Sequence record: MN871440.1
DNA length: 64,000 nt
Strand: one strand, 5' to 3'
Below the pieces are notes generated by a model, which saw only the letters and a program-made list of their open reading frames with translations, ran no database searches and was not told where the DNA came from. Both the position numbers and the translations under genes were made by a program. This document shows positions 2,005-62,893 of the stretch, piece after piece; the stretch's first letter is position 1; each line of letters begins with the position of its first letter.

Positions 2005-2889
2005 ATGAAATACGTTATACACAAACAAACAAAAAATAACGGTCTGTTGACATTCATGGAAGTAGACCGAGACGTTGCAAGAGAAATGATTGAGAAAAAT
2101 CATTACTCGAAAAAGTGGAATACCTCGTTTGGAATAGTGAACATTGGCGTGTTTCGTGATGATGTTCTTCTTGGGGTTGCTGTGTTTGGGAATCTGATGA
2201 ACCCGGGTTCTTACAAATCAATTTCAGATGAACTTGAATCAAATAACATAATCGAGTTGAATCGATTGTGGATTGATGATAGTATCGGGCATAATGGCGA
2301 AACCACTATGCTCGGTGCGTCATTTAAAATCATTCGCAAGTGTTATCCTCATATCAAAGCAATTCAAAGCTTTGCTGATGGTAGACTTGGTTGTGGTACA
2401 ATCTACAAAGCATCGAATTTCGATTACTACGGTTTCGATCAAACTCTATTTGCCGAGAACACCGAAACCGGAGAAGTGTTTCATCATGTTCCGTTCGAGA
2501 ACACAAAACGACCGGGTTCTATGCTCGAACGTTGGAGAATGCTTCTCGATGATAAATGCAAGTGGTTTGATGTCAAAACTTATCGCTACATTTATTGGCT
2601 AGACAGAAAGGTAAAGTGCAAGAAAGAAAAATTGCCTTATCCCGAGTATAGCAAAGGCATAGACTATCGAGAATTCACTTATCCGCCGAGAATGTACGCG
2701 AGAGCTTATCTGATGTTCAAGTGGAGAGGCGAAGATAACTATGCTAATCTAGCGAAAGCTAAATCAAAATCTCTTGACTTCGACGCCGAGATAAAAGATC
2801 TCGAAGAAAACGAGACGATGAAATGGCTAAAAACTCTTGACGAATTCAATCGAGATAAAGGGTTGACCGATCTGTTCGGTGACTTCTAA
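2005..2889 (+). CDS. mom: Mu Mom-like DNA adenine modification enzyme (GNAT fold)
   Basis: Motifs KNHYSKK, IGVF..LLGVAVFG, IELNRLW, QSFADGRLG, IYKASNF, YRYIYWL, PYP are collinear with Mu Mom as I recall it (KHYSRR, LGVF, ELNRMW, QSFADERCG, VYQASNF, YRYIRFL, PYPK); AAGGAG RBS before ATG 2005. Confidence 0.85.
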   Translation: MKYVIHKQTKNNGLLTFMEVDRDVAREMIEKNHYSKKWNTSFGIVNIGVFRDDVLLGVAVFGNLMNPGSYKSISDELESNNIIELNRLWIDDSIGHNGETTMLGASFKIIRKCYPHIKAIQSFADGRLGCGTIYKASNFDYYGFDQTLFAENTETGEVFHHVPFENTKRPGSMLERWRMLLDDKCKWFDVKTYRYIYWLDRKVKCKKEKLPYPEYSKGIDYREFTYPPRMYARAYLMFKWRGEDNYANLAKAKSKSLDFDAEIKDLEENETMKWLKTLDEFNRDKGLTDLFGDF

Positions 2890-2896
2890 CTAAATA
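2889..2896 (+). promoter_or_regulatory. T4-type late promoter (ACTAAATA) for gene 49
   Basis: Variant of TATAAATA directly upstream of endonuclease VII; gene 49 has a late promoter in T4. Confidence 0.55.
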
Positions 2897-2911
2897 GAGT
2901 CATATTCACTA

Positions 2912-3412
2912 ATGGAAAATGACTCTATGATCCTGACACCGAAGACATACGACACCGCTAAAGAAAAACTGTACCATGCACAAAACGGCATTTGCCCCCT
3001 CTGTAAGCGTGAGCTTGATAAAGAGATTAACAAAAATCATCTTGATCATGATCACGAATTAGATGGGCCGCAAGCTGGACGTGTGCGCGGTTTGCTGTGT
3101 TGCTTTTGTAACAAGTTTGAAGGTATGGTTAGACATGAGTTTATGCGATCTGGTCTGGCGTCTAGAAATGTCGATTACATCACACAACTAAAAACCTTGA
3201 TATCGTATCTCGAACAAGATACCAAAGAAAATGACATTCACCCGAAACTGTTGCCAGATCTGAAAAAGCGTTTCGCTCGTCAAGATAAGCCAGCGATGAT
3301 TGCCGAGTTGCAAGCAAACGGTTTCGCGTACAACGACGGCATGACTAAGGCGGATCTCTGCAAAGTCTACAACAAAGAAATGCCAAAAAAGATGAAAAAA
3401 CTTCATAATTGA
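2912..3412 (+). CDS. 49: Recombination endonuclease VII (Holliday junction resolvase)
   Basis: QNGICPLC..HLDHDHE..RVRGLLCCFCN Zn/His-Asn motifs. Confidence 0.95.
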   Translation: MENDSMILTPKTYDTAKEKLYHAQNGICPLCKRELDKEINKNHLDHDHELDGPQAGRVRGLLCCFCNKFEGMVRHEFMRSGLASRNVDYITQLKTLISYLEQDTKENDIHPKLLPDLKKRFARQDKPAMIAELQANGFAYNDGMTKADLCKVYNKEMPKKMKKLHN

Positions 3413-3413
3413 T

Positions 3414-3450
3414 TTGACATAACAGCCAGTCTTCTATAGACTGGCTGTTA
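3414..3450 (+). promoter_or_regulatory. Early promoter embedded in 12-bp inverted repeat
   Basis: TTGACA 3414-3419 N17 TAGACT; taacagccagtc/gactggctgtta stem. Confidence 0.65.
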
Positions 3451-3470
3451 TTGTTTTAGAGGATAATATC

Positions 3471-3641
3471 ATGACACTAGAAGAAGCATTTGAAATCAGA
3501 TCAAAGATTAACGCTATGCTCAAGAGCAAAGACAAAACCGAACGATCTACCGCTATGATAATGGATAGTGTTCTGCGTGGCGAATATCTTCGTATTGAAG
3601 ACGCAAAAGAAGATATCAAATTTCTTTCCGAAACTAATTGA
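3471..3641 (+). CDS. Hypothetical protein (56 aa, MTLEEAFEIRSK...)
   Basis: Read by hand: GAGGA RBS, ATG 3471, TGA 3639-3641; not in ORF track. Confidence 0.7.
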   Translation: MTLEEAFEIRSKINAMLKSKDKTERSTAMIMDSVLRGEYLRIEDAKEDIKFLSETN

Positions 3642-3693
3642 CACCGATTGCGAATCTGCTAAGATAGCTACATCAACAAACGAGAGATATATC

Positions 3694-4128
3694 ATGGAAA
3701 ACATTGCAAAAGTTTACGCTGAACAAATCTATACCAGTGAAAAAATTCAACTATGGAAGGATGCTCGCGAAATTCTCAAGAAAGTTATCACTGGTGAATT
3801 GACCCGTTATGATTGCCGGGAAGGTCTGTGTGATTTGCTTCCTATCAATCTGACTGCCAAAGAAATCAACAAAGATTTCGAATACTGGAGTGGCCAGCGT
3901 GGCTATGTTCTTTACTCTGGTAAGACTACCGAGTCCGGTCGTATCAATGAAGAATATTTGGATCAAGCAATCGCAGAGTACAATCAAGAGAATCGGTTCT
4001 GTCGCGGTGAAGTTGATGACACTAATCCGGAATACTGGGAAGCTCGTAAATCATTGGCTTGTCACTGGGTGAAATTCGTTGAACTGGTTCTGAGTAACAT
4101 TGTTAGTCTGGAGAAAAATGATGCTTAA
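3694..4128 (+). CDS. Hypothetical protein, paralog 1 of tandem trio
   Basis: ATG 3694 with GAGAG RBS; shares GLC and YxxxRxxLAxHW motifs with next two ORFs. Confidence 0.8.
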   Translation: MENIAKVYAEQIYTSEKIQLWKDAREILKKVITGELTRYDCREGLCDLLPINLTAKEINKDFEYWSGQRGYVLYSGKTTESGRINEEYLDQAIAEYNQENRFCRGEVDDTNPEYWEARKSLACHWVKFVELVLSNIVSLEKNDA

Positions 4129-4561
4129 TTGGATTCGAAATTGGTTCAAGAAACCGGAACCGATTGATCACGAAAAAGTAGCATTCACTGAACACTTGGA
4201 TGCTTTCATGGACACTGAACGATTTAAGCGTGATGTTCTTTTTCTTAAAAGCGTTAGCACAAAGGATATGGAAGACCTCCGGTTTGGTCTGTGTGTCTGT
4301 ATGAATGGACTAGCGAATCTTGCTTTCAAGCGTTATGCGAATCGCGGCTATAAATATTTTAGTGGTGATCACGTTTATCCGATTGAAGGTGGTATTCATG
4401 CATACCATGATTTCTCTCAACTTCTGATGAAACCGGCGGAGGAGATTGAATACTACAAAAAGCGTGTCGAACTTGCCAATCACTGGCTGAAAGTAATTGA
4501 GCAGTATCAAAACGAGAAAAAAGCGTATACTGGCATTATCTTATCGAGAGGAATAAATTAA
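4118..4561 (+). CDS. Hypothetical protein, paralog 2 of tandem trio
   Basis: GGAG RBS; FGLCVC and YYKKRVELANHWL motifs. Confidence 0.8.
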   Translation: MMLNWIRNWFKKPEPIDHEKVAFTEHLDAFMDTERFKRDVLFLKSVSTKDMEDLRFGLCVCMNGLANLAFKRYANRGYKYFSGDHVYPIEGGIHAYHDFSQLLMKPAEEIEYYKKRVELANHWLKVIEQYQNEKKAYTGIILSRGIN

Positions 4562-5028
4562 TGTTTACTGCACTGCAAGCCAAAATCAAATCCATTTTCA
4601 TGAGCAAGAACGAGCGTCTGAAACTGAAATTTCTGGACAACTCGGATCTGACAAAGTATTATGATTTGCTGAAACTTCGTATTGAAAAGCCAGATCGATA
4701 CGCCGAAGCAATGAAAAAACTGTATAAGATCTCAGATCGAACTTTGGCGCGCAAGACAATTGCGTGTGGCGTCTGCTATCACGTTGGATTTGAATTGGCT
4801 AGTATTCTGCGAGTCGATTCGCTTATGGCGATGTATCCACACTGGGACAAAGAAACATGCAACGACTTGTTTCTGATTGACATCAAAGACGGTAGCAGCC
4901 CTCAAATGCAGTATGCTGACGAACGCTATTACCGGAATAATGTAAAATACTATGAAGCTAGGCTTGAACTAGCTAGACATTGGCTCAATGTGATGACGTT
5001 CGTTGATAATCATTACAATCAAAAGTAA
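4561..5028 (+). CDS. Hypothetical protein, paralog 3 of tandem trio
   Basis: GAGGA RBS; CGVCYH and YYEARLELARHWL motifs. Confidence 0.8.
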   Translation: MFTALQAKIKSIFMSKNERLKLKFLDNSDLTKYYDLLKLRIEKPDRYAEAMKKLYKISDRTLARKTIACGVCYHVGFELASILRVDSLMAMYPHWDKETCNDLFLIDIKDGSSPQMQYADERYYRNNVKYYEARLELARHWLNVMTFVDNHYNQK

Positions 5029-5033
5029 ATAAG

Positions 5034-5057
5034 AAATCCCGTTAAGTCGGGATTTTT
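5034..5057 (+). terminator. Rho-independent terminator
   Basis: aaatcccg-ttaagt-cgggattt plus T run. Confidence 0.75.
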
Positions 5058-5078
5058 AAAAATCTAAAGATGTAAAAT

Positions 5079-5107
5079 GTTTACATCAACCGTGATTAAT
5101 GTATAAT
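5079..5107 (+). promoter_or_regulatory. Early promoter for nrdA
   Basis: GTTTACA...TGTATAAT, T4 early-type -35 and extended -10. Confidence 0.7.
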
Positions 5108-5141
5108 GTATCTCTCCTCCATACAAACACAACGAGGTAAC

Positions 5142-7376
5142 ATGTTAGTAAGAAAATCAAGTGGTATTACAGAAAGCTTTGACAAACAGAAACTTTATCG
5201 CATAATCACGTTTGCTACCACTGGCACACGAATTGATCCGATTGAGATCATGAGTGGTATCATGTCGTCTATAACTAACGGTATGAGCACAAAAGACATT
5301 CAAAAGCTGGCAATCAAGTTTGCCGCAGACAGAATTTCTATTGAACAACCTGATTATCAGTATGTTGCGGCTCGTCTGCAAATGTATGCCTTGCGCAAAC
5401 AAGCATATAATCAGTTTGATCCTCCGCATCTGAAACGCCATACGCTCGAACTGGTACAAGATGGCATCTATGATCCGGATCTTGCTACTAAATGGACTGA
5501 TGAAGAATTCAGTGAGCTGAATAACTATATCATTCACGAACGCGATTTTAATCTGGCTTATGCTGGTGTAATGCAGTTCAAAGAAAAGTATTTGGCGAAA
5601 GATCGCAGTACCGGAGAGTTGTACGAAACTCCACAAATGCTTTATATGCTGGTTGCAATGTGCTTGCATCAAGACGAAAAAACAGATAGACTCGCTAAAG
5701 TTAAAAACTTTTATGACGTCACTTCTCTTGGCAAGCTGAGTCTTCCGACTCCTATTCTGGCTGGTGTTCGTACTCCGACCCGTCAGTTTAGCTCATGCGT
5801 CAAGATTGAAAGTGGCGATGAACTCGATAGCATTAACGCAACCGCTAGTTCTATCGTTGACTATATCAGCAAGAGAGCTGGTATCGGTATCAATGGTGGT
5901 GCTATTCGTGCTGAAGGCTCTAGAATTCGTTCTGGCGAGGTTCGTCATACTGGTATTATCCCATTCTGGAAATACTTTCAGACTGCGGTAAAAAGCTGCT
6001 CACAGGGCGGTGTACGTGGTGGCGCTGCTACTCTGTATTATCCGATGTGGCATCTTGAAGTTGAAAAAATCCTTGTGCTCAAGAACAACAAGGGTGTGGA
6101 AGAAAATCGAATCAGACACTTGGACTACGGTATCCAAATCAATAAAATGTTCTGGGAACGTCTGAAAAACGATGATTATATCACGCTGTTTAGTCCTGAT
6201 GTTCAAAATGGCGAGCTTTACGATCTGTTCTATAAAGATCCCGTTAAGTTCAAAGAGTTGTACGAAATGCTGGAAGAAGAACCGTTTGTTCGCAAAAAGC
6301 GTATCAAAGCATCTGAGATCTTCAACCTGTTTGCGCAAGAGCGTACTGGCACAGGTCGAATTTATCCGATGTTTATTGATAACGTGAACTCGGCTACTCC
6401 GTACAAAGAGCCAATTCGTCAGTCCAACTTGTGTATTGAGATCGCGTTGCCGACATATCCGGTTAAGCGTGATGGTTCCGGCGAGATCGCTTTGTGTACT
6501 CTTGCAGCATATAATCTTGGCGCAATTGAGGGCTATGAAGACTTCCTAAACGTTGCTCGCGCTGCTGTTCGCGCACTCGATAATTTGCTTGACTATCAGG
6601 ATTATCCAGTTGCTCAAGCATTGCCAGCGAAGAAACGCCGCGCACTCGGTATTGGTGTTACAAACGTTGCTTATTTCCTTGCCAAGAACTTTGTCAAGTA
6701 TTCTGACGGTAGTGCGAAGAAAATTATTCATCGTACTATGGAAATGATGCAATTTGCTAATCTTGTTGCGTCTATGGAACTCGCGAAAGAACGTGGTGCG
6801 AATGAATGGCATCACAAGACAAAGTGGGCTGATGGACTGCTGCCGATTGATTGGTATAACAAGAATGTTGACAATATCGTTCCGAACGATCTGAAAATGA
6901 ACTGGGAATGGCTGAGATCTGAAATCAAACAGCACGGCCTGCGAAATGACACTCTAAGCGCATTTATGCCTTGCGAGAGTAGTTCACAGATTACCAACAG
7001 CACAAACGGAATTGAGCCACCACGCGGCCTAGTGAGTACCAAGCAATCCAAAGATGGTGTCTTTAATCAGCTAGTACCGGAAGTGGAAATGCTTGGTAGC
7101 GAATATGAGACTGCATGGCAGATGACTAAGTATGGCATGAAGGGATATCTTGATTGTGTCGCGATTATGCAGAAGTTTGTGGACCAAATGATTAGTGCCA
7201 ACACTTATTATGATCCGTCTGTGTATCCGGGTGAGAAAATCCCGATGAAAGTCGTATTGAAAGATATGTCAAGAGCGCAGAAACATGGTGTTAAATCACT
7301 GTATTATTCTAATACTCGCGATGGTGCTGATGGTACCGAAGATCAAGATTCATCCTGCGATACTTGCAAGGTCTAA
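5142..7376 (+). CDS. nrdA: Class Ia ribonucleotide reductase large subunit
   Basis: N-terminal ATP cone, FSSC, QSNLCIEI, C-terminal CDTC; GAGG RBS before ATG 5142. Confidence 0.97.
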   Translation: MLVRKSSGITESFDKQKLYRIITFATTGTRIDPIEIMSGIMSSITNGMSTKDIQKLAIKFAADRISIEQPDYQYVAARLQMYALRKQAYNQFDPPHLKRHTLELVQDGIYDPDLATKWTDEEFSELNNYIIHERDFNLAYAGVMQFKEKYLAKDRSTGELYETPQMLYMLVAMCLHQDEKTDRLAKVKNFYDVTSLGKLSLPTPILAGVRTPTRQFSSCVKIESGDELDSINATASSIVDYISKRAGIGINGGAIRAEGSRIRSGEVRHTGIIPFWKYFQTAVKSCSQGGVRGGAATLYYPMWHLEVEKILVLKNNKGVEENRIRHLDYGIQINKMFWERLKNDDYITLFSPDVQNGELYDLFYKDPVKFKELYEMLEEEPFVRKKRIKASEIFNLFAQERTGTGRIYPMFIDNVNSATPYKEPIRQSNLCIEIALPTYPVKRDGSGEIALCTLAAYNLGAIEGYEDFLNVARAAVRALDNLLDYQDYPVAQALPAKKRRALGIGVTNVAYFLAKNFVKYSDGSAKKIIHRTMEMMQFANLVASMELAKERGANEWHHKTKWADGLLPIDWYNKNVDNIVPNDLKMNWEWLRSEIKQHGLRNDTLSAFMPCESSSQITNSTNGIEPPRGLVSTKQSKDGVFNQLVPEVEMLGSEYETAWQMTKYGMKGYLDCVAIMQKFVDQMISANTYYDPSVYPGEKIPMKVVLKDMSRAQKHGVKSLYYSNTRDGADGTEDQDSSCDTCKV

Positions 7377-7385
7377 CATTTTCAC

Positions 7386-7401
7386 AGGGGCTTCGGCCCC
7401 T
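7386..7401 (+). terminator. UUCG hairpin between nrdA and nrdB
   Basis: aggggc-ttcg-gcccct, no T tract (stabiliser or weak terminator). Confidence 0.5.
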
Positions 7402-7417
7402 ATAACAAGGAATAAAA

Positions 7418-8548
7418 ATGGATACCGTATTTAATAAAAATGTAGTTGATCATATGAAAGCTCCGTTGTTCTTGGGCGAAGCAATGGGATTAGCCAGATA
7501 TGAAACAGTAAAACACCCAGCGATTGACAAATTAACGGAACGTTCTCTATCATTTTTCTGGCGTCCCGAAGAAGTGGATTTGTCCAAAGATGCAATCGAC
7601 TACAATCAACTGAGTGAAGCCGAACAGCATGTTTTCACCCAGAATCTGAAATATCAAAGTCTGCTTGACTCCGTGCAGGGTCGCGCACCTAACTTGGTAT
7701 TCTTGCCAATCGTGTCCGATGTCGCGCTTGAGACTTGGATCACTACTTGGAGTTTTAGTGAGACAATTCATAGCCGTTCTTATACTCACATCATGCGGAA
7801 TATCTATGTTGATCCGTCTGCTGTGTTTGATAAGATTCTGCTTGACAGTAAGATCATGGCACGTGCCACTTCTGTAACTCAGTATTACGATAATCTGATC
7901 AAAGAGTTGAAAACATACGATCTGGTATCACAGCCCGTATTCTCTCCGGAGTTGCGAATTGCACAACTGACCAAGGTCAAAGAAGCGTTGTATCTTGCAA
8001 TGCACGCCGTAAACGCTTTGGAAGCAATTCGTTTTTATGTTAGCTTTGCTTGCACCTTCTCGTTCGCTGAACGTGGTATCATGGAAGGCAATGCTAAGAT
8101 CATGCGTCTGATTGCGCGGGATGAACAGCTTCATCTGAAAGGCACCCAGTATCTGATCCGTGCTTGGCAGAATGCAGAAGATGATTCCGAAATGTATGAG
8201 ATTGCTAAACGTCTCGAACACAAAGCGGTACAAATCTTCTTGGAAGTTGCCGAACAAGAGAAAGACTGGGCAAGAGACTTGCTGGGTAATGTTACTCTTC
8301 CTGGCCTGAGTCTATCTAGCATGTTGGATTACATCGATTATCTGACTGTAAGCCGTATGCGCTCTGCTGGTCTTCCTGCACCGGAAGAACTGAATACCAG
8401 CATGAAACACCCTCTTCCGTGGATTCGCAAGTGGCTGAATAGTGATTCCGTTCAAGTCGCTGCTCAAGAGGCTGAGTTGTCTAGCTATCTGATCGGACAA
8501 GTTGATTCAACTCTCGATGATAGTTTCTTTGAAGAACTAGAAGTTTAA
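7418..8548 (+). CDS. nrdB: Class Ia ribonucleotide reductase small subunit, no intron
   Basis: FFWRPEE, LDSVQ, ETIHSRSY, EAIRF, DEQLH di-iron motifs. Confidence 0.97.
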   Translation: MDTVFNKNVVDHMKAPLFLGEAMGLARYETVKHPAIDKLTERSLSFFWRPEEVDLSKDAIDYNQLSEAEQHVFTQNLKYQSLLDSVQGRAPNLVFLPIVSDVALETWITTWSFSETIHSRSYTHIMRNIYVDPSAVFDKILLDSKIMARATSVTQYYDNLIKELKTYDLVSQPVFSPELRIAQLTKVKEALYLAMHAVNALEAIRFYVSFACTFSFAERGIMEGNAKIMRLIARDEQLHLKGTQYLIRAWQNAEDDSEMYEIAKRLEHKAVQIFLEVAEQEKDWARDLLGNVTLPGLSLSSMLDYIDYLTVSRMRSAGLPAPEELNTSMKHPLPWIRKWLNSDSVQVAAQEAELSSYLIGQVDSTLDDSFFEELEV

Positions 8549-8551
8549 CAG

Positions 8552-8579
8552 AATCCGCCTTCGGGCGGATTTTTTATTT
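8552..8579 (+). terminator. Rho-independent terminator
   Basis: aatccgcc-ttcg-ggcggatt plus T run. Confidence 0.9.
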
Positions 8580-8645
8580 CCAAAATGTGTTGACACTTGG
8601 TATCGTTCTGATAATATGGACACATCTAAACGAGAGGAACAAATC

Positions 8646-8909
8646 ATGAAATACCAAATTCGAGTTTTTAAGAACGAACAAACTAAGCAAGCTTATGTTG
8701 CTGCAAACAGAGAGGCTATGGCGTCAGAAAACAAAGATTTCGCGCACCGTATGTTTGGTATGGTGTTCTATGATATGAACACATCTGAATTTGACTCTGA
8801 TATCATGAACATAGAAGCAAAGAGCAAGTTCGGTGCTTTCTGTGCTGCTCGTTCGATTGTTCGTAAACAAGGTTTTAAACTCATTACTCAATGTGAGGAT
8901 CTGAAATGA
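8646..8909 (+). CDS. Hypothetical protein (87 aa)
   Basis: GAGGA RBS, ATG 8646, downstream of TTGACA/GATAAT promoter near 8590-8615. Confidence 0.7.
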   Translation: MKYQIRVFKNEQTKQAYVAANREAMASENKDFAHRMFGMVFYDMNTSEFDSDIMNIEAKSKFGAFCAARSIVRKQGFKLITQCEDLK

Positions 8910-8992
8910 AAGGCTTTACTCTGATCGAATTGATTGTTGTTGTTGCAATCCTGGGAATTCTTTTCAGCGTTGTTGCTCCAACAATTTTCTAA
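8906..8992 (+). CDS. 28-aa prepilin-like peptide MKGFTLIELIVVVAILGILFSVVAPTIF
   Basis: Read by hand: GAGGA RBS 8895-8899, ATGA overlap with upstream stop; class III signal G|FTLIE with pilin F1, E5, G14, P22. Confidence 0.8.
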   Translation: MKGFTLIELIVVVAILGILFSVVAPTIF

Positions 8993-9061
8993 AAAGAAGA
9001 TACCGAGTTACTTTCTTTGTTCGGCTAAGTTTATTACCGACATAAATAGTATTACTATAAG

Positions 9062-9089
9062 AACGAGTCGAGAGACTCGTTTTTCTTTT
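9062..9089 (+). terminator. Hairpin with T tract in nrdD leader
   Basis: aacgagtc-gaga-gactcgtt followed by ttttcttt. Confidence 0.6.
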
Positions 9090-9114
9090 CCTACACACTC
9101 ACAACGGAAACAAA

Positions 9115-11229
9115 ATGCAAGTACAAAAACGCGACGGTCGAATCGTTGATTTTGATCGTTCTTTTATTGAAACAGCAATCTCTAATTCTCTGCAATCTAT
9201 CGGCATCACCGATCCCACCTTCCCACACCACGCTACCGAAGCTGTTGTTCGCAAACTCGCTGGACGCTCTAAGGTAACGATTGAAGAAATTCAACACGTA
9301 GTTGAAGACACCTTAATGAAATCACGCTATCCTGCTGTGGCTCGCGCCTATATCGAATATCGATATGATCGTGACGTTGCTCGTGACTTGAATTCAGACA
9401 TGACTAAACGAATCATGGGACTGATGAAGCAGGAAGACGAATCAATCATGAACGAAAACGCCAACAAAGACGCTAAGGTAATCCCAACTCAACGTGATTT
9501 GGTAGCTGGTATCGTTAGCAAGCACTTTGCAAAACATTATCTCCCTTCTAATGTAATACAAGCGCATGAAAACGGCTGGATTCACTTCCACGATCTTGAT
9601 TATTCTCCGTTCTTCCCGTCATTCAACTGTATGCTGATTGATGTTGAAGGGATGTTAACTCGTGGATTCAGAATGGGTAATGCTCAGATTGAAACTCCGA
9701 AAAGCATTTCTACCGCTGCTGCTGTAGTCGCTCAGATTATCGCACAAGTAGCAAGTCACATTTATGGCGGCAACACGATTAATCGCATTGACGAAGTGTT
9801 GGCACCGTATGTTAGAATGACACATGAAAAGCATTTGGATGAAGCGCGTTACTGGAAGATTCCAGATCAACAGCAATATGCTATTGAAAAGACTCGCAAA
9901 GCTGTGTATGATGCTATGCAAGGACTTGAATACGAAGTGAATACCCTTCACTCCGCAAACGGACAAACTCCGTTCTGTACCTTCGGATTTGGTCTTGGTA
10001 CTAGCTGGGAGTCAGAACTGATTCAAGAAGCAATCTTGAAAGTGCGTCTGAAAGGTCTTGGTAAGAAAGGCATCACTGCCGTTTTCCCGAAACTTGTATT
10101 CGCTCTGAAAGACGGACACAACTTGAAGCAAGGTGATCCACTGTATCGTATCAAACAGTTGGCTCTGGAATGCGCGTCAAAACGTATGTATCCGGATATT
10201 CTGAGTTATGATAAAGTAGTTGAAACCACCGGCTCATTTAAGTTCCCAATGGGATGCCGTAGTTTCTTGCATCGCTGGGAAGATGAAAACGGTAATGAAG
10301 TTCACGAAGGTCGAAATAACCTCGGCGTTGTGACTCTGAATCTGCCACGTATCGCTCTTGATGCAAATCAAAATCATATGCGTTTCTGGGAACTTCTGGA
10401 AGAGCGTATGGAAGTAGTCAAGAAAGCTTTAATGGTACGTGTTGATCGTCTGCGCGGAGTTAAGGCAAGCGTTGCTCCTATTCTCTACGTTGAAGGCGCT
10501 TGTGGTGTACGTCTGAATCCAGATGATGACATTATGAAAGCGTTTGAAAACGGTCGTGCTTCTGTTAGTATTGGTTATATCGGTCTGCATGAAGTCACCG
10601 AAATCATGATGTCTAACATTGATGAACACATCATGGAGAATCAATCCAAGCAAGTATTCGCCGTTTCTGTTCTTCAACGAATGAAAGAAATCGCGGATGC
10701 ATGGAAAGCACAAACTGGACTCGCATTCAGTCTGTACGGTACTCCATCCGAAAGTCTGTGCTATCGTTTTGCAAGAATTGACCGCGAACGTTATCCAGAT
10801 CACAAGATCTTTGATAAAGATTATTACACAAACAGTTTCCATCTATCCGTTGATCATAATACAAATCCGTATGACAAGATCGACTTTGAGAAACAGTTTA
10901 TCCCGTTCAGTACCGGTGGATTTATTTCATACGGTGAATATCCGAACATGAAAAATAATCTGGAAGCACTTGAGCAAGTTTGGGATTATGCTTATCTGAA
11001 TACTCCCTACTATGGCACCAATACTCCAGTTGATTCATGTTTCGAATGTGGATTCCACGGTGAATTTACCGCGACTTCTAAAGGATACGAATGTCCTAAG
11101 TGTGGTAATCATGACGGCAAAAAGATGAATGTTATTCGTCGTGTTTGTGGTTATTTGGGTGAAGTTAACGCTCGTCCATTTAACAAAGGCAAACAACAAG
11201 AAGTTATTCGTCGCGTGAAACACATGTAA
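9115..11229 (+). CDS. nrdD: Class III anaerobic ribonucleotide reductase, with ATP cone, no intron
   Basis: VQKRDGR ATP cone, IHFHDLDY, MGCRSFL, NLGVVTLNL, CxxC..CxxC, RRVCGYL glycyl radical loop. Confidence 0.97.
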   Translation: MQVQKRDGRIVDFDRSFIETAISNSLQSIGITDPTFPHHATEAVVRKLAGRSKVTIEEIQHVVEDTLMKSRYPAVARAYIEYRYDRDVARDLNSDMTKRIMGLMKQEDESIMNENANKDAKVIPTQRDLVAGIVSKHFAKHYLPSNVIQAHENGWIHFHDLDYSPFFPSFNCMLIDVEGMLTRGFRMGNAQIETPKSISTAAAVVAQIIAQVASHIYGGNTINRIDEVLAPYVRMTHEKHLDEARYWKIPDQQQYAIEKTRKAVYDAMQGLEYEVNTLHSANGQTPFCTFGFGLGTSWESELIQEAILKVRLKGLGKKGITAVFPKLVFALKDGHNLKQGDPLYRIKQLALECASKRMYPDILSYDKVVETTGSFKFPMGCRSFLHRWEDENGNEVHEGRNNLGVVTLNLPRIALDANQNHMRFWELLEERMEVVKKALMVRVDRLRGVKASVAPILYVEGACGVRLNPDDDIMKAFENGRASVSIGYIGLHEVTEIMMSNIDEHIMENQSKQVFAVSVLQRMKEIADAWKAQTGLAFSLYGTPSESLCYRFARIDRERYPDHKIFDKDYYTNSFHLSVDHNTNPYDKIDFEKQFIPFSTGGFISYGEYPNMKNNLEALEQVWDYAYLNTPYYGTNTPVDSCFECGFHGEFTATSKGYECPKCGNHDGKKMNVIRRVCGYLGEVNARPFNKGKQQEVIRRVKHM

Positions 11230-11230
11230 T

Positions 11231-11252
11231 AAAGGGGGCTTCGGCCCCTTTT
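11231..11252 (+). terminator. Rho-independent terminator
   Basis: aggggg(c)-ttcg-gcccct plus tttt. Confidence 0.75.
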
Positions 11253-11754
11253 GTCATTAAGGAGAATCAAAATTAAGATAATCGATTATAAGACGCTAGA
11301 CGTATTAAACGGAACTGGCACTCGTTCTACAATATGGCTTGCTGGGTGTAGTCACCAATGCAAAGGATGCTTTGGGAAGAATACTTGGAAATGGGAAGGT
11401 AAGACAGAAGAAGAAATCGAACTACGTAAGCTCGTGAAACGCGATATGAGCGATTCCCGTATCAAGCGTGATGGGATATCACTACTTGGTGGTGATCCGC
11501 TGTATGAGCGCAACCTAGACGGTTTAATCGAGTTTCTGAAATGGTTTCGATCTGAGTTCCCGAATAAAACAGTTTGGCTCTGGACAGGATATACCAAAGA
11601 AGAATGTTTACTTGAGCCTAAAAAGAATGTTATAGTTACTTCACTGATTGACGTTCTTGTTGACGGAAAATTCGTTGAAGAACTTAAAGACGTTGATTTA
11701 AAGTTCCGTGGGTCCAGTAATCAACGCATCATTTACATAAGTGAGAATGTATGA
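11251..11754 (+). CDS. nrdG: Anaerobic RNR activase (radical SAM); true start possibly ATT at 11272
   Basis: NGTGTRSTIWLAGCSHQCKGC (CxxxCxxC), GISLLGGDP, RGSSNQR. Confidence 0.93.
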   Translation: MSLRRIKIKIIDYKTLDVLNGTGTRSTIWLAGCSHQCKGCFGKNTWKWEGKTEEEIELRKLVKRDMSDSRIKRDGISLLGGDPLYERNLDGLIEFLKWFRSEFPNKTVWLWTGYTKEECLLEPKKNVIVTSLIDVLVDGKFVEELKDVDLKFRGSSNQRIIYISENV

Positions 11755-12134
11755 AAGCAATTCAAGTATTAAGCGGGCATTTGCGTGGTGCAATTCTATT
11801 TGTTACCGAAGATGCAATCCGAGTTATTTGTGCTCCCGGTTATCATGACGATGAAATTCTCAAAGTCGGCAGCGTTAAATATGATGCCGTGAAGCATCAA
11901 GTTAATGTCTCTGTTACTCGCGAAATCGACATCGTTAAAGAATATCAGCCTAACGGTGGCCAACACCTCAATGTTAATGTGTTCACCCGTGAAACTCTGG
12001 TAAATGCTATGGAACACCCGGAACAATATCCGAATCTGACAATCAGAGTTTCAGGCTATGCCGTTCGTTTCTCTGCTCTGACCAACGAGCAACAACTTGA
12101 TATTATCAATCGAACTTTTACTCAAGTAATTTAA
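11751..12134 (+). CDS. grcA: Autonomous glycyl radical cofactor (GrcA/YfiD, T4 vs.6-like)
   Basis: GGQHLNVNV...HPEQYPNLTIRVSGYAVRF. Confidence 0.95.
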   Translation: MKAIQVLSGHLRGAILFVTEDAIRVICAPGYHDDEILKVGSVKYDAVKHQVNVSVTREIDIVKEYQPNGGQHLNVNVFTRETLVNAMEHPEQYPNLTIRVSGYAVRFSALTNEQQLDIINRTFTQVI

Positions 12135-12143
12135 GGAATAATA

Positions 12144-12416
12144 ATGCTGGAAGTGTACGGTTTCGATCCTCTCGAACTCGAATGCAAACCCTGTCTGAAT
12201 GCCAAGCGTCTGCTTGACACCAGAATGGTAGACTATGTTTTTCTGCCTATTGCAAAAATCAGTAAGACAGAAGAACACAAAACAAATAAAGCTGATCTAA
12301 CTCGCCGTGCAAAAGAACATGGTGTTGTGGTTACTTCTATGCCTCAAGTATTTGCTGATGATGAATATATTGGTGGCTTTGAAGAACTCAAAACTTGGGT
12401 CAACGAAAACGCATGA
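12144..12416 (+). CDS. nrdC: Glutaredoxin-like thioredoxin NrdC
   Basis: EVYGF..CKPCLNAKRLL..MPQVF..YIGGFEEL, T4 NrdC pattern. Confidence 0.85.
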   Translation: MLEVYGFDPLELECKPCLNAKRLLDTRMVDYVFLPIAKISKTEEHKTNKADLTRRAKEHGVVVTSMPQVFADDEYIGGFEELKTWVNENA

Positions 12417-12703
12417 AAATAGAAATCTACGGCGTACCGGAAGAATTTGTTCAATGTCCCGGTTGTAAAGCTGCCGTCGATTTCTGTCGTTCTTATGGGT
12501 TAGAATTTACATTTATACCGGTTCTTATTAAAGATTCATCATCTATTGGTTTCACATATCATCGTGCTAATATTGAAGAATGTAGATTAAGAGCTGGTAA
12601 AGACACGCCTCCGAGATCATACCCTCAGATTTTTGTCAACGATAAATGGGTAGGTGCATACAAAACTTTTAGCGAAAAGTTTGAAGGAGGTTGTCTTGAC
12701 TGA
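12413..12703 (+). CDS. nrdH: Glutaredoxin NrdH
   Basis: MKIEIYGVPE..CPGC..SYPQIFV, T4 NrdH pattern; ATG 12413 overlaps upstream stop. Confidence 0.85.
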   Translation: MKIEIYGVPEEFVQCPGCKAAVDFCRSYGLEFTFIPVLIKDSSSIGFTYHRANIEECRLRAGKDTPPRSYPQIFVNDKWVGAYKTFSEKFEGGCLD

Positions 12704-13196
12704 AAAAGACGTACAGGCAGCGATTGCCAGAAGTCGCGAATTTCAACTTAGGTATGATCTAATCGTACCGAATTGCTATACTCAATATGACAACGAGGCA
12801 GATTTATTTTGCTTGCGTCCTAGTGGGTTGTGTGATGAAATAGAAATCAAAGTGAGTCGATCTGATTTCAAAGTGGATGCAAAGAAACAAGTTCGAATCT
12901 CAGAAAAATTAGAGAAGCCTACACTATACCGAACTCACAGAATGGTGCGCAAGACGAAGCGGGAAGCTTTAGAAGCGGGTCATATGTCGAATTATTTCTG
13001 GTATGCTGTGCCCGAAGGACTGGTCAAGCCAGATGAAGTTCCTTCTTGGGCTGGCCTGATCTATATATATTCTCATGGTAGTGCCGGTGTCGTCAAGAGT
13101 GCGAAACGTTTGCATAAGCAGCCGTTAAGTGCTATTGAGTCGTATAAGACCGCACGAAAGATGGGATACAAGTATTGGAACAAGGTTCTGGCGTAA
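12696..13196 (+). CDS. PD-(D/E)XK nuclease-like protein, MmcB-like
   Basis: EADL...EIEIKVSRSDF..D..K and NYFWYAVP..WAGLI motifs; TTG start after GGAGG. Confidence 0.65.
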   Translation: MTEKDVQAAIARSREFQLRYDLIVPNCYTQYDNEADLFCLRPSGLCDEIEIKVSRSDFKVDAKKQVRISEKLEKPTLYRTHRMVRKTKREALEAGHMSNYFWYAVPEGLVKPDEVPSWAGLIYIYSHGSAGVVKSAKRLHKQPLSAIESYKTARKMGYKYWNKVLA

Positions 13197-13273
13197 GTCA
13201 GAACCTTTTTTGTTGTTGACGAACACCGAATAGTATGCAAGAATGTGCATACATCAAAACGAGAGGTGAATAA

Positions 13274-13522
13274 ATGAACGTTGTATTTGGTAATATCTGT
13301 AACACTCGCATCGTTGAAGCTGTTGAAGCTCGCAAGAAAACTGGTATGGCATGTGATCCGAAATGGCTTGACGAACAAGTCGAATGGATGTATGCTGATG
13401 TCTCCAAGGTAGTTGCTAATACTCAGTGGTTGAAAAACGAGTTGCGTGAGCATCTGGTTGCTTTCATTCTACGTGAATATGATGTAATTGCTTTTGGTGT
13501 GGATAATGGCATCAAGCGTTGA
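13274..13522 (+). CDS. Hypothetical protein (82 aa)
   Basis: GAGGTG RBS, own promoter-like TTGACG upstream. Confidence 0.75.
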   Translation: MNVVFGNICNTRIVEAVEARKKTGMACDPKWLDEQVEWMYADVSKVVANTQWLKNELREHLVAFILREYDVIAFGVDNGIKR

Positions 13523-14948
13523 GATTCTACAGGCGGTCCCTGCTGCTGGTAAAACAAAAGCTATTCTGACTCACGTTCGAAAGAACAAAAAGCCTTGTAT
13601 CATAGCGTCAATTAGTTGTCAGTTATCGCAACAAAGTTTTGACTTTTACAACAAGATTAGTGGTGACAATGACAGTATTATCATTGACTCAGATCATGTT
13701 AGTAGAAGCAAGAGCGTCGCCGAGGTAATAAAAGAAAGCATCGGACAGAATAGAGTCATTTTCATTACTCATGCTGCGTTGCTGGCATATCCAGATTATG
13801 AAGACATGAGAGATCATGAACTCTATATCGATGAAGTACCTGATTTTGTTCAATTAAATCAGTTGAAATTCACTGACAACCTTGACTTTATCGGGAAATA
13901 CTGCGACACTGTTGATGGCAGAATGACATTAAAAGAAGAGTGTCGTTCGAAAGTAGAAAAGATTGCTACCGATGGTCTATATGGTCATGATGTGGTGTCA
14001 AGTTCTGTTTTCTCATTAGCAAGATCTCTGTTGCAAAATATCCCCGTTATTCTCAAAGATAACGTGGTATACTTTATCGATGATAGTACAACCCAAAAGT
14101 GGAACGTCTTTTCTAAGATCACAATCGCTTGTGCAAACTTTAAAGAGACATTCACCGGTGTTGTTCTCAAAGACTTTTGCGGTTGGAAATTCAAAACAAG
14201 CCCGTTGATGAAAAAACTGGATTTCATTCAGTATCCGAATTCGAGTAGAGTCGAGATCGTGCCATTATTCGATGGTATCTGGTCTAGATATGCTGCCGAC
14301 AAAGATATCGACGGAGAAAGTGTTTACAACAAGGTCAAGGATAATGTGTATGATTTAGTTGGCATGACGCCGTTTATCTACACAACAAATAGTTATCGTG
14401 CGGCATTGAAAGTTGGACATCGAGTTGCTTATAACCCACACGGGCTAAACAGCTATATGAGCCACACAACTGCGGTAGCGTTATTCAGCTATAATCCTAT
14501 GCCTTGGCAAATCGAGTTGCTGAAATGTCTGTCTAGCTGTCACGACATGGACACAAACAAGTTGATTGATGCTTATTTGGTATCGAAATATCTTGAGCCT
14601 GTGTTTCAATTGTGCTTGCGTACCGATATTCGTAATCAGCATTCAACATGGAAAGTCACGCTGTTGGTCCCAGATTTACGCGCTGCTGAGTATCTGAAAT
14701 CGAGATATCTGTTAGAGGCTAAGATCGACACAAATCACATGATTAGTGGACCAGCACGTAAAGAGCGAAAGAAAGAAGAACTGCCTCGCAAAAAGAAACT
14801 TAGTTTCGTGAACATGTTCGACTTTACAAAAGCAGAACAAGGAAAGTTCTATCGATGGTCAGCAAAAATGGATTTAAAGCTTGACGTCATACAACCCGAG
14901 CATGTTAAACTGGTATCAGACTGGATAAATAAGCTCCGGAGTTTATAA
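13506..14948 (+). CDS. Divergent SF2-like helicase/P-loop ATPase
   Basis: Walker A AVPAAGKT, Walker B YIDEVP, motif VI-like FQLCLRTDIR, basic C-terminal tail. Confidence 0.7.
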   Translation: MASSVEILQAVPAAGKTKAILTHVRKNKKPCIIASISCQLSQQSFDFYNKISGDNDSIIIDSDHVSRSKSVAEVIKESIGQNRVIFITHAALLAYPDYEDMRDHELYIDEVPDFVQLNQLKFTDNLDFIGKYCDTVDGRMTLKEECRSKVEKIATDGLYGHDVVSSSVFSLARSLLQNIPVILKDNVVYFIDDSTTQKWNVFSKITIACANFKETFTGVVLKDFCGWKFKTSPLMKKLDFIQYPNSSRVEIVPLFDGIWSRYAADKDIDGESVYNKVKDNVYDLVGMTPFIYTTNSYRAALKVGHRVAYNPHGLNSYMSHTTAVALFSYNPMPWQIELLKCLSSCHDMDTNKLIDAYLVSKYLEPVFQLCLRTDIRNQHSTWKVTLLVPDLRAAEYLKSRYLLEAKIDTNHMISGPARKERKKEELPRKKKLSFVNMFDFTKAEQGKFYRWSAKMDLKLDVIQPEHVKLVSDWINKLRSL

Positions 14949-14962
14949 AGTTGCATTTACAT

Positions 14963-15002
14963 AGTATACTTCTTTTGTTGACAAAAACAAAGGAAGTATA
15001 CT
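14963..15002 (+). promoter_or_regulatory. 17-bp hairpin covering the gene 55 ribosome-binding site
   Basis: agtatacttc-ttttgtt / aacaaag-gaagtatact, ends 2 nt before ATG 15005. Confidence 0.7.
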
Positions 15003-15004
15003 GT

Positions 15005-15529
15005 ATGGCAGATTACGTTAACAACGAAGAACTTTATCAAGCATTTGTCGCTTGGAAAGAGAAGTTGAAAGAAAACCCCAGTGAGCGAATGCCCGAGTTC
15101 ATTGGTTCTTCAATCATGAAGATCGCTTATGGGTTCACGAATTATTGGCGATTTAGTCGTTATACCGACACTTGGAAAGAGCTGATGGTTGGTGATGCTG
15201 TTGAAACTTGCTTGAAATACTGCAAGAACTTTGACACCGAACGATATACGAATCCACACGCATATATTACCATGATATGTGCTCGCTCGTTCATTGCTCG
15301 AATTAGACATTCCAAGAAAGAAGAAGCTGCAAAGTATAAGTATTTTTTGGAACACGTCCATGATGCCGAAGATGAAGATATGGCAAAATTAGTTGACCTA
15401 TCTTTCTATAATGACATGATGACCAAAGCAAACGACTTTGAAGCTACAATGAAAAATCAGAAAGCTAAAAAGCCAAAGCAACTAGGCGGATTGTCATTCC
15501 TTGAGGATGACGATGATGCCGACGAATAA
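15005..15529 (+). CDS. 55: Late-transcription sigma factor gp55
   Basis: YVNNEELY, IGSSIMKIA, FSRYT..WKELMVGDA, NPHAYIT, acidic C-tail. Confidence 0.95.
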   Translation: MADYVNNEELYQAFVAWKEKLKENPSERMPEFIGSSIMKIAYGFTNYWRFSRYTDTWKELMVGDAVETCLKYCKNFDTERYTNPHAYITMICARSFIARIRHSKKEEAAKYKYFLEHVHDAEDEDMAKLVDLSFYNDMMTKANDFEATMKNQKAKKPKQLGGLSFLEDDDDADE

Positions 15530-20417: not shown

Positions 20418-21095
20418 ATGCAACTGAGCAAAGAAACTGTAGAAATCCTGTCTAACTTCGCCAAAATCAATCCGTCTGTGGTGCTGAAACCGGGTACTTT
20501 TATCAACACCAAGAGCGTCAACAACGTTCTGTATGCATCCGCTACTATCAAAGATCAAATTGATAGCGAACTGCGAATCTACAGTCTGGGTGAATTGATT
20601 GGTGTAGCCAACATGATTGGTCTGCCTGCTCAAGTGACTGAGGATGGTGAATACATCACTATCAAGAATGCAGCCGGTGGCAAGTCTATGGCTAAGATCA
20701 AGATGGCAGAAGCTGGTACCATCATTCATCCGAAGAAAGCTATCAGCATCCCAACCGCGTCCGTTGTGTTTGAGCTGACCGAAGAACAACTGAAACAGAT
20801 CATGAAATCTGCTTCTACCATGTCACTGGTTGATCTGCACTTTGTAAATGATGGTCGCAAGATTCTGGCTCGACTGACTGGCGGCGACGCTAACAGCAAT
20901 ACCTTTGAAATTCCGGTTGCTGACGATTACGAAGGTAACGACGCTAACTTTGATTTCATCGTTGCACTTGGTAACATGAAAATGACCGATGCGAAATACA
21001 AAGTAATGATTGCTAAAGAAGGTGCAATCTGCTTTGAAGGTGCTAACGCAAGTTACATTATCTCGCTGGATGCCAAGTCCAAATATACCGCTTAA
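20418..21095 (+). CDS. 45: Sliding clamp gp45
   Basis: MQLSKETVEILSNFAKINPS..LKPG..., synteny with 44/62. Confidence 0.95.
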   Translation: MQLSKETVEILSNFAKINPSVVLKPGTFINTKSVNNVLYASATIKDQIDSELRIYSLGELIGVANMIGLPAQVTEDGEYITIKNAAGGKSMAKIKMAEAGTIIHPKKAISIPTASVVFELTEEQLKQIMKSASTMSLVDLHFVNDGRKILARLTGGDANSNTFEIPVADDYEGNDANFDFIVALGNMKMTDAKYKVMIAKEGAICFEGANASYIISLDAKSKYTA

Positions 21096-21185: not shown

Positions 21186-22157
21186 ATGACTGTGACTGTT
21201 ACTGATCCAAATGAGTTTATGTGGGAACAAAAGTTCCGACCAAATCTGATTTCTGAGTGTGTTCTTCCTGAATCTGATATCGAGCGTTTTAAAGGTATTG
21301 TTGCTTCTGGTCGAATTCCACACATTCTGCTTTACTCTAAGAGCCCCGGCACTGGTAAGACCACAATGGCTCGCGTTCTGTGTAACGAGATTGACGCCGA
21401 AGTGATGTTTATCTCTGGTGGTAAACTGCGTATCGATGACTTGCGTAATAGCTTGACCGCATTTGCGTGTACTACTACACAAAAGCCCGGTGGCAAAGTT
21501 ATCATCATCGATGAAGGTGATAACAAGGGTATGAAAGCAGTTCACGAAGAACTTCGTTCTTGGATGGAAGCATACAGTTTCAACTGTTCTGTGATCATGA
21601 CTTGTAATCATGTCGAAGCAATCCCGGCGCCGCTCAAGTCTCGTTTCCGTCAGATCGAATTTGGTAATCCGACTGATGCAGACAAGATCCGAATGATGAA
21701 AGAAATGATTCTTCGGTGCGAAAAGATTTGCGAAATCGAAGGTGTTGTAGTAGAATCTCGTAAGGCTATCGCTGCACTGGTTAAGATGAATTTCCCAGAT
21801 CTGCGCGGTACCATTACAACTCTCGATAGCTATGCCAAGTCTGGCAAGATCGATGAAGGTGTTTTGACCAAAGCGACTCAGGCAACTGAGGATATGAACG
21901 AAGTAATCGAAATGCTTCGAACTAAGAAACTCGGCGCGATTCGTGCTATGATTCCGAAGTTTACTGTCGATTATGATAACTTCGTTACCAAGCTTTATGA
22001 GCGTTTGTTTACTGAAATCAAACCGGCTGGATTGCGTGTTATGATCAAGCTGATTGCGGAAAACCAGAAGTACGCAAACGACATTCCGAACATGGAGATT
22101 CACCTGTTTGATCTGCTGGCAGATCTCGCGTTTGAACTCGAAACCACATGGAAATAA
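21186..22157 (+). CDS. 44: Clamp loader large subunit gp44
   Basis: WEQKFRP, SPGTGKTT, IIIDE, LKSRF. Confidence 0.97.
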   Translation: MTVTVTDPNEFMWEQKFRPNLISECVLPESDIERFKGIVASGRIPHILLYSKSPGTGKTTMARVLCNEIDAEVMFISGGKLRIDDLRNSLTAFACTTTQKPGGKVIIIDEGDNKGMKAVHEELRSWMEAYSFNCSVIMTCNHVEAIPAPLKSRFRQIEFGNPTDADKIRMMKEMILRCEKICEIEGVVVESRKAIAALVKMNFPDLRGTITTLDSYAKSGKIDEGVLTKATQATEDMNEVIEMLRTKKLGAIRAMIPKFTVDYDNFVTKLYERLFTEIKPAGLRVMIKLIAENQKYANDIPNMEIHLFDLLADLAFELETTWK

Positions 22158-22160
22158 ATT

Positions 22161-22739
22161 ATGTCTCTAGATTTTCTTGGTGAAGAAAGCTTAAACGAGC
22201 ACGAAGTTGCATGGCGTTCCAGAGATTGGGACGCTGTAAAAGAACTGGCTAAACAGTTCAAAGTTCCAGCTGAACAAAGTCTGTTTGTGGTACTGGACAA
22301 CGTTACCAAGAAACTAGGTCATGGGTCTGTTGCGCGATTTGCCGATTATGACCAACATATGTTGAATAATGCTTTGTCCCAGCATGTTGAAATGAGAGGT
22401 TATGCTTTCGAACTCAACACGATGGAAGGTCACATTTCTGATCAAATGCATTATGATTACATGTATTTTACCATTCGTCAGTGTAGTCTGCCTAAAGTCA
22501 AGTTTGCTAAACTCACTGACGACTGGGAAGAACGAGTGTTCGAATACCTAGTTTCTGACTTTTACGAAGTCTCGACACAACGAGCCAGAGAATATATCAA
22601 TCGCTTCTCTGATGAACAAAAAGCCAAGCTGAGAAAAATGTTTTCTCCGATGGTAAATGATGTCAACGCACCGTGCTTGACAATGATCCCAACTAAAACC
22701 GAACGTGATAAAATTCAACGCGCTATCCGTTCTTGGTAA
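22161..22739 (+). CDS. 62: Clamp loader small subunit gp62
   Basis: N-terminal SLDF, NALSQH, ISDQMHYDY; synteny. Confidence 0.9.
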   Translation: MSLDFLGEESLNEHEVAWRSRDWDAVKELAKQFKVPAEQSLFVVLDNVTKKLGHGSVARFADYDQHMLNNALSQHVEMRGYAFELNTMEGHISDQMHYDYMYFTIRQCSLPKVKFAKLTDDWEERVFEYLVSDFYEVSTQRAREYINRFSDEQKAKLRKMFSPMVNDVNAPCLTMIPTKTERDKIQRAIRSW

Positions 22740-46348: not shown

Positions 46349-46360
46349 GTTATTTAGTGA

Positions 46361-62817: not shown

Positions 62818-62893
62818 TGCGTTACCTCGTTCTGTGTGTTATGCTAGTATTTAGTAATGATGTTAAAAAATAGAGTCTTTAAAAAGAGGAAAC

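Follow-up and report, generated by a model that had tools for sequence, protein, structure and literature searches.

Genomic setting of the Mom-like gene

We analyzed a stretch of 64,000 nucleotides from the Aeromonas phage AsFcp_1 (MN871440.1), hereafter called the window, in which window coordinates are AsFcp_1 coordinates. Phages of the PX29/AsFcp group are T4-like myoviruses (Straboviridae, Angelvirus) with Aeromonas salmonicida as host. The gene considered here is an open reading frame on the plus strand (2005-2889) that has no internal stops and encodes 294 amino acids followed by a stop codon, and its DNA is 100% identical in phage PX29 and in AsFcp_1, AsFcp_2 and AsFcp_4. The identity of the gene is already known, as its PX29 copy (CL89_gp046) carries the RefSeq name 'Mom-like DNA modification protein', with no annotation of the C-terminal tail. 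The translation together with profile, PDB and Foldseek matches delimits a Mom/GNAT catalytic domain (residues 15-213, 2047-2643), a helical C-terminal extension (residues 214-280, 2644-2844) and a flexible tail (residues 281-294, 2845-2886), the last of which includes a putative gp45-binding motif encoded at 2863-2886. Gene 49, encoding endonuclease VII, and nrd genes lie downstream, and genes 55, 47, 46, 45, 44, 62, regA and 43 follow farther downstream on the same strand. The products of this run include the gp55 late sigma factor (15005-15529), which belongs to a known class of gp45 partner and carries L-S-F-L close to its acidic C-terminus. From the Mom gene to gene 55 (2889-15005) the offset between AsFcp_1 and PX29 coordinates shifts by 476 bases, indicating at least one indel in that interval.

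The Mom gene is situated in a same-strand run of small genes of early type with sigma-70-like promoters upstream, and no late-promoter-like site was found directly upstream of it. A late-promoter variant has been reported for the phage Aeh1, and three ACTAAATA sites that fit this type occur in the window (2889-2896, 46351-46358 and 62848-62855), a count that is not above chance. Each is directly upstream of a gene, namely gene 49, a neighbor of the lysozyme gene and a tail-fibre gene, the latter two being of late type; the first of these octamers is on the plus strand directly 3′ of the Mom stop codon. The setting weakly suggests that Mom expression goes with that of the replication genes and is not late as it is in Mu.

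The encoded protein is probably an active Mom-type enzyme

A first-pass annotation of the window, made from its letters alone, had placed the open reading frame in the Mom family, and profile and structure searches bear this out. The protein matched Pfam PF25680 over residues 15-213 with 193.4 bits (E 4.6e-57) against a curated cut-off of 27.1 bits, and PHROG 1384 at 4.5e-56, and a sequence search of the PDB returned Mu Mom (8bv8; E 3e-27) as the sole match. An AlphaFold2 model built from 69 sequences had a mean pLDDT of 93.9. When this model was searched with Foldseek, chains A and B of 8bv8 were the top matches (E 2e-17, TM 0.71-0.78 normalized by target), with other GNATs far behind at E about 1e-4.

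In a 2026 mechanistic study, Mu Mom was shown to transfer glycine, after replication, from Gly-tRNA(Gly) to the adenine N6 of duplex DNA, with R111, S124, D149 and R151 as essential residues and H58, Y59 and Y159 as important ones. Alignment of the window protein with Mu Mom and 235 relatives placed H33, Y34, R87, D125, R127 and Y134 opposite Mu H58, Y59, R111, D149, R151 and Y159, respectively, so that six of the seven active-site residues are identical. The seventh position, Mu S124, is occupied by T100, and threonine is found there in 107 of the 120 closest relatives. We conclude that the gene encodes a Mom-type enzyme that is probably active.

The chemistry of a clamp-tethered Mom might nevertheless differ from that of Mu, with another aminoacyl-tRNA, acyl donor or acceptor giving a product other than carbamoylmethyl-adenine. 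Identity to Mu Mom is about 34%, threonine replaces Ser124, and equivalents of Mu W48 and W181 are absent. The product is moreover not readable from sequence, and the Mu study found that the substrate of a Mom enzyme cannot be predicted from structure. Set against this are the six identical active-site residues, the fold match to 8bv8, which far exceeds that to other GNATs, and the report in the same study that metagenomic Mom homologues are active. We therefore regard a different product as fairly unlikely. As a separate observation, the tRNA cluster of the phage includes a tRNA-Gly(UCC) (L004:569-642, L004 being one of the further loci of this genome).

Mom and the phage DNA polymerase end in the same peptide

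The C-terminus of Mom reads GLTDLFGDF, and that of the 920-residue gp43 family-B DNA polymerase, encoded on the plus strand at 23246-26008, reads SLTDLFGDW. Seven of the last eight Mom residues are thus those of gp43, the common LTDLFGD being encoded at 2863-2883 in Mom and at 25982-26002 in gene 43, within the stretch that encodes the C-terminal clamp-binding tail of the polymerase (25979-26005). It had been proposed that the two tails are alike as peptides and not through DNA copying, and that the seven residues are identical by different codons. The seven residues hold, as does the first of these proposals; the codons differ at five of the seven positions, each difference being synonymous. 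Across the 21 nucleotides that encode the peptide, 15 are identical, and of the 30 nucleotides upstream only 9 are, which is the level of unrelated sequence.

We compared the last nine residues in all 46,665 pairs of the 306 likely genes of the whole genome, which were read piecewise from the window and from loci L002-L005. Mom and the polymerase have 7/9 terminal residues in common, and just one other pair exceeds 5/9, formed by two small, paralogue-like ORFs. Because codons and flanks differ and the 7/9 score stands apart, the Mom tail is neither a chance match nor a recent DNA copy from gene 43: chance is excluded, and copying of gene 43 DNA was rejected as a poor fit. The two small ORFs (AsFcp_1 106239-106466 and 185782-186051) agree at 8/9 terminal residues and are probably paralogues.

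The polymerase tail corresponds to the gp45-docking tails of T4 and RB69

The alignment of the window gp43 with RB69 gp43 reaches to within two residues of the C-terminus, ...EKKTSLTDLF lying opposite ...EKKASLFDMF. Crystal structures show the last 11 residues of the RB69 polymerase on the sliding clamp gp45 and the T4 motif LDFLF filling a hydrophobic pocket in it; T4 gp43 ends in ...ASLDFLFG. It is reported that the motifs at the C-termini of gp43, gp33 and gp55 are freely interchangeable, with linkers that are divergent and probably unstructured, and gp45 offers three sites only, which are common to replication and late-transcription partners. The same genome encodes a cognate clamp and its loader, both on the plus strand: gp45 (20418-21095) was identified by profile and PDB matches, at 8.6e-33 with T4 gp45 (1czd) and 4e-31 with RB69 gp45 (1b77/1b8h), and the adjacent genes encode the gp44 and gp62 clamp loader (21186-22739). 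Two points of the first-pass annotation, that the gp43 tail is akin to the gp45-docking tails of T4 and RB69 and that the phage has a gp45 clamp of its own, are thereby corroborated, and gp45 becomes the proposed docking partner of Mom.

The tail of Mom is a short motif on a divergent, flexible tether

The Mom model is confident to about residue 280, including the helical extension past the Pfam domain, and confidence then drops to pLDDT 52-59 over residues 281-294 (the last two 10-residue blocks), against an average of about 94 elsewhere in the model. The model thus predicts a short linear motif held on a flexible tether. Residues 214-280 are typical of a long-form Mom subfamily, with the last part divergent in sequence. 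The closest relative, the metagenomic protein P0002, is 62% identical, aligns end to end and terminates in ...LSSLFGD, a tail of the type seen on the polymerase of the PX29 relative Aeh1 (...SLSDLFGDM). P0024, at 49-52% identity, terminates in ...SLDELFA. The three proteins form one clade in a neighbor-joining tree of the catalytic core, and an alignment of the three is scrambled over the last ~40 residues save for the invariant L287, L290 and F291.

The P0024 contig is T4-like and carries PNK, dCMP deaminase, Mom, two small ORFs, endonuclease VII and nrdD, its endonuclease VII being 47% identical to that of the window; the neighborhood from Mom to gene 49 is therefore common to this contig and the window. 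On the 1.2 kb P0002 contig, the fragment upstream of Mom is unrelated to the gene upstream of Mom in the window. A scan of IMG/VR with a degenerate DNA pattern of the exact Mom tail returned PX29 only, plus four non-terminal chance matches, and a tblastn search of cultured phages with the C-terminal 81 residues returned the PX29/AsFcp group only. Among 80 IMG/VR Mom loci, no further gp45-type tail and one beta-clamp-type tail were found, so that clamp-type tails are rare among these loci. The Mom homologues of the T4-like phages Phynn and S-SSM6a are short and have no tail, and neither do most family members, including the short Mu-like forms, from which it follows that the tail is not needed for Mom activity. 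In another group of Mom homologues (L091-L099 and L102-L103), several of which come from large phage contigs (51-304 kb), the proteins end in ...S-x-S-F-F, ...E-F-F-E or ...P-F-F-G, which may be another clamp-type tail.

Similar tails occur on other proteins of the same genome

The motif L..[LMF]F was sought in the last nine residues of the 306 likely genes; it was framed after several tails had been seen, and its count of six genes against 0.7 expected is illustrative and not a formal test. The six encode gp43, gp33, Mom, a D12 adenine methylase of Dam type, a fusion of a P-loop ATPase with a GNAT domain, and one baseplate hub protein, which we take as a chance match. The late-transcription coactivator gp33, encoded just beyond the window, was identified by Pfam Trans_coact (1.4e-19) and ends in L-E-Q-F-F.

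The two remaining genes were compared with their families, independently of the genome-wide count. Homologues of the Dam methylase (L004:41309-42178, AsFcp_1 202309-203178) end at a conserved ...EIL..N[FL] block, to which the AsFcp_1 copy adds a Lys-rich linker and the clamp-like tail SSLMKMFDI; its nearest homologues were found without the appended linker and tail. The ATPase-GNAT protein (L004:45385-46563, AsFcp_1 206385-207563), which has a tail of LDF type, belongs to phrog_11143, a family of unknown function with more than 7000 matches and a usual end of ...SHEYIG. Only the nearest relatives of the AsFcp_1 protein have tails, TLDFLF, SSLDFLFG and TLDDFF for example, which match the published T4 motif, and one metagenomic member has a tail of the T4 gp43 type. 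On these family comparisons, both tails lie past the usual family ends. The contigs of three tailed homologues, two of the ATPase-GNAT and one of Dam, are from T4-like or large lytic phages. The Dam gene is full-length in AsFcp_1 and AsFcp_2; the match in PX29 covers the C-terminal ~42% only, and that in AsFcp_4 is in four pieces.

Modifier tails in other phages

A comparable pair was found in Vibrio phage vB_VmeM-32, where ...LNAVLDI terminates the polymerase and ...IKDILDI the ATPase-GNAT homologue, both of the form [VI]LDI. At another phage locus (L105:2902-11119), a Tet_JBP dioxygenase, two glycosyltransferases (Glycos_transf_1 and TAGT) and an ATPase-GNAT protein occur together and all four end in L-x-[DE]-F-F, an ending that is found on no gene of the locus besides these DNA-modification enzymes. 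Judged from these endings, modifier tails in other phages appear to track the local polymerase tail, and the position of the ATPase-GNAT protein beside the Tet/JBP and glycosyltransferase cluster suggests an uncharacterized DNA-modifying role for it. The vB_VmeM-32 polymerase (L109:1-1381) is annotated as two adjacent CDSs, with the LDI tail on the second.

A different tail type is found among Mom proteins themselves. The motif Q..[LIM]F is present in the last 12 residues of 18 of the 120 Mom proteins closest to that of the window, with 0.04 as the expectation derived from internal windows; P0007, P0059, P0061, P0072, P0087, P0090, P0091, P0100 and P0119 are among them. These tails are of the bacterial beta-clamp-binding pentapeptide type (consensus QL[SD]LF). 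Proteins that carry them are scattered across the tree, and two whose surroundings were looked up are in replication modules on small phage contigs, with no clamp gene in the stretch read. The motif Q-x-x-[LIM]-F was not found near the terminus of the window Mom, whose tail has no glutamine.

We suggest tentatively, at a little under even chances, that clamp-binding tails are a general, portable device that couples post-replicative DNA modification in phages to replication, the tails of Mom, Dam, Tet/JBP proteins, glycosyltransferases and ATPase-GNAT proteins co-evolving with the gp45-type clamp of the phage itself or with the beta clamp of the host.

Probable recruitment of Mom to gp45-loaded DNA and alternative explanations

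Taken together, these findings make it probable that a portable clamp-binding motif recruits Mom to phage DNA loaded with gp45. In the series of steps that we infer, from Mom-gp45 binding through the chemical product to the anti-restriction benefit, gp44/62 would load gp45 rings onto phage DNA and the Mom tail would dock in the hydrophobic pocket of a free gp45 subunit. Bound in this way, Mom would be concentrated on fresh phage duplex and slide along it, and modification of adenines would be prompt and selective for phage DNA, preceding both the action of restriction enzymes and packaging. The first-pass annotation had Mom working at the fork. Tethering to the clamp is supported, and 'behind the fork on loaded clamps' is the more apt description of the site of action, because the substrate of Mu Mom is duplex DNA that has already been replicated.

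An analogy bears on the size of the effect. T4 alpha-glucosyltransferase co-purifies with gp45 and its clamp binding has been confirmed, yet the share of DNA that is modified is set mainly by the level of expression and not by binding to the clamp. A large effect of tethering should therefore not be assumed for Mom, and the benefit may be modest. The same finding can be read in favor of a regulatory tail, which would bind gp45 so as to compete with the polymerase, gp33 or gp55, or would sequester Mom; the three gp45 sites, being common to replication and late-transcription partners, would allow for such competition. Several DNA-modifying enzymes unrelated to one another have like tails, in this phage and elsewhere, which fits recruitment to the substrate better, and we consider regulation improbable.

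Binding of the tail to something other than gp45, for example the beta clamp of the host or a further protein of the replisome, is very improbable. The close Mom relatives with Q..[LIM]F tails do make an ancestral interaction with the beta clamp plausible, but the tail of the window Mom is without glutamine, and is the same as the tail of the phage's own polymerase, which is homologous to tails that dock on gp45. Finally, although Mom and gene 43 are on the same strand and 21 kb apart in one genome, a tail without function that recombination with the gene 43 3′ end left behind, or that arose by chance, is disfavored to the point of being scarcely credible by the differing codons and unrelated flanks, by a 7/9 match that is unique among unrelated gene pairs and by retention of the motif in relatives at about 50-62% identity despite a diverged linker.

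Relation to known systems

The window protein is like Mu Mom (8bv8) in its Pfam family, its GNAT fold and its equivalents of H58, Y59, R111, D149, R151 and Y159, and it is probably likewise an anti-restriction DNA modifier. It is unlike Mu Mom in having threonine at the position of S124 and an extra C-terminal extension of ~80 residues that ends in a clamp motif; it also belongs to a lytic, T4-like phage with its own replisome, has no com-type neighbor and is probably not a late gene. With the gp45 partners of T4 and RB69 (the C-termini of gp43, gp33 and gp55 and an internal loop of T4 DNA ligase) it shares a short hydrophobic L..[LMF]F-type motif; in Mom this motif stands at the very C-terminus, is carried by a flexible linker of divergent sequence and is identical to the cognate polymerase tail, but Mom is a base-modifying enzyme and not a replication or transcription factor.

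T4 alpha-glucosyltransferase is also a post-replicative, anti-restriction DNA modifier of a T4-type phage that associates with gp45, whereas its enzyme family and chemistry are other than those of Mom, and we found no description of a polymerase-like C-terminal tail on it. Dnmt1 resembles the proposed Mom system in that a DNA-modifying enzyme is brought to new DNA by a clamp-binding motif, and differs from it in that a PIP box directs cytosine methylation for epigenetic maintenance on PCNA in a eukaryote. Our literature searches found no paper on a clamp motif of Mom, Dam, phage methylases or other hypermodification enzymes, and the 2026 paper on the Mom mechanism makes no mention of a clamp. 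The 'sliding clamp' of a paper on a T-dioxygenase was rejected as a precedent, as the term there means ParB. The Mom annotation, the gp45 motif, which is textbook knowledge, and the clamp association of DNA modifiers are already known. The first-pass annotation had called a replisome-coupled modifier undescribed; this stands for Mom in that no paper was found, while the pairing of T4 alpha-glucosyltransferase with gp45 and that of Dnmt1 with PCNA are precedents for the concept itself.

If Mom is recruited in this manner, it would explain how a slow, tRNA-dependent, post-replicative base modification can match very fast replication and be confined to phage DNA, and the gp45 'tool belt' would gain DNA modifiers. 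A terminal clamp motif that matches the tail of the resident polymerase would then be a signature for DNA-acting enzymes among unknown phage genes. The ATPase-GNAT family is one candidate for being flagged as DNA-acting by its tail, and the broader tail pattern merits a systematic survey. A clamp-like segment was also noted inside a protein: the 486-residue product of the gene at 13488-14948 of the window (phrog_2467, function unknown) has K-L-S-F-V-N-M-F-D-F ~40 residues from its end, which recalls the internal gp45-binding loop of T4 ligase.
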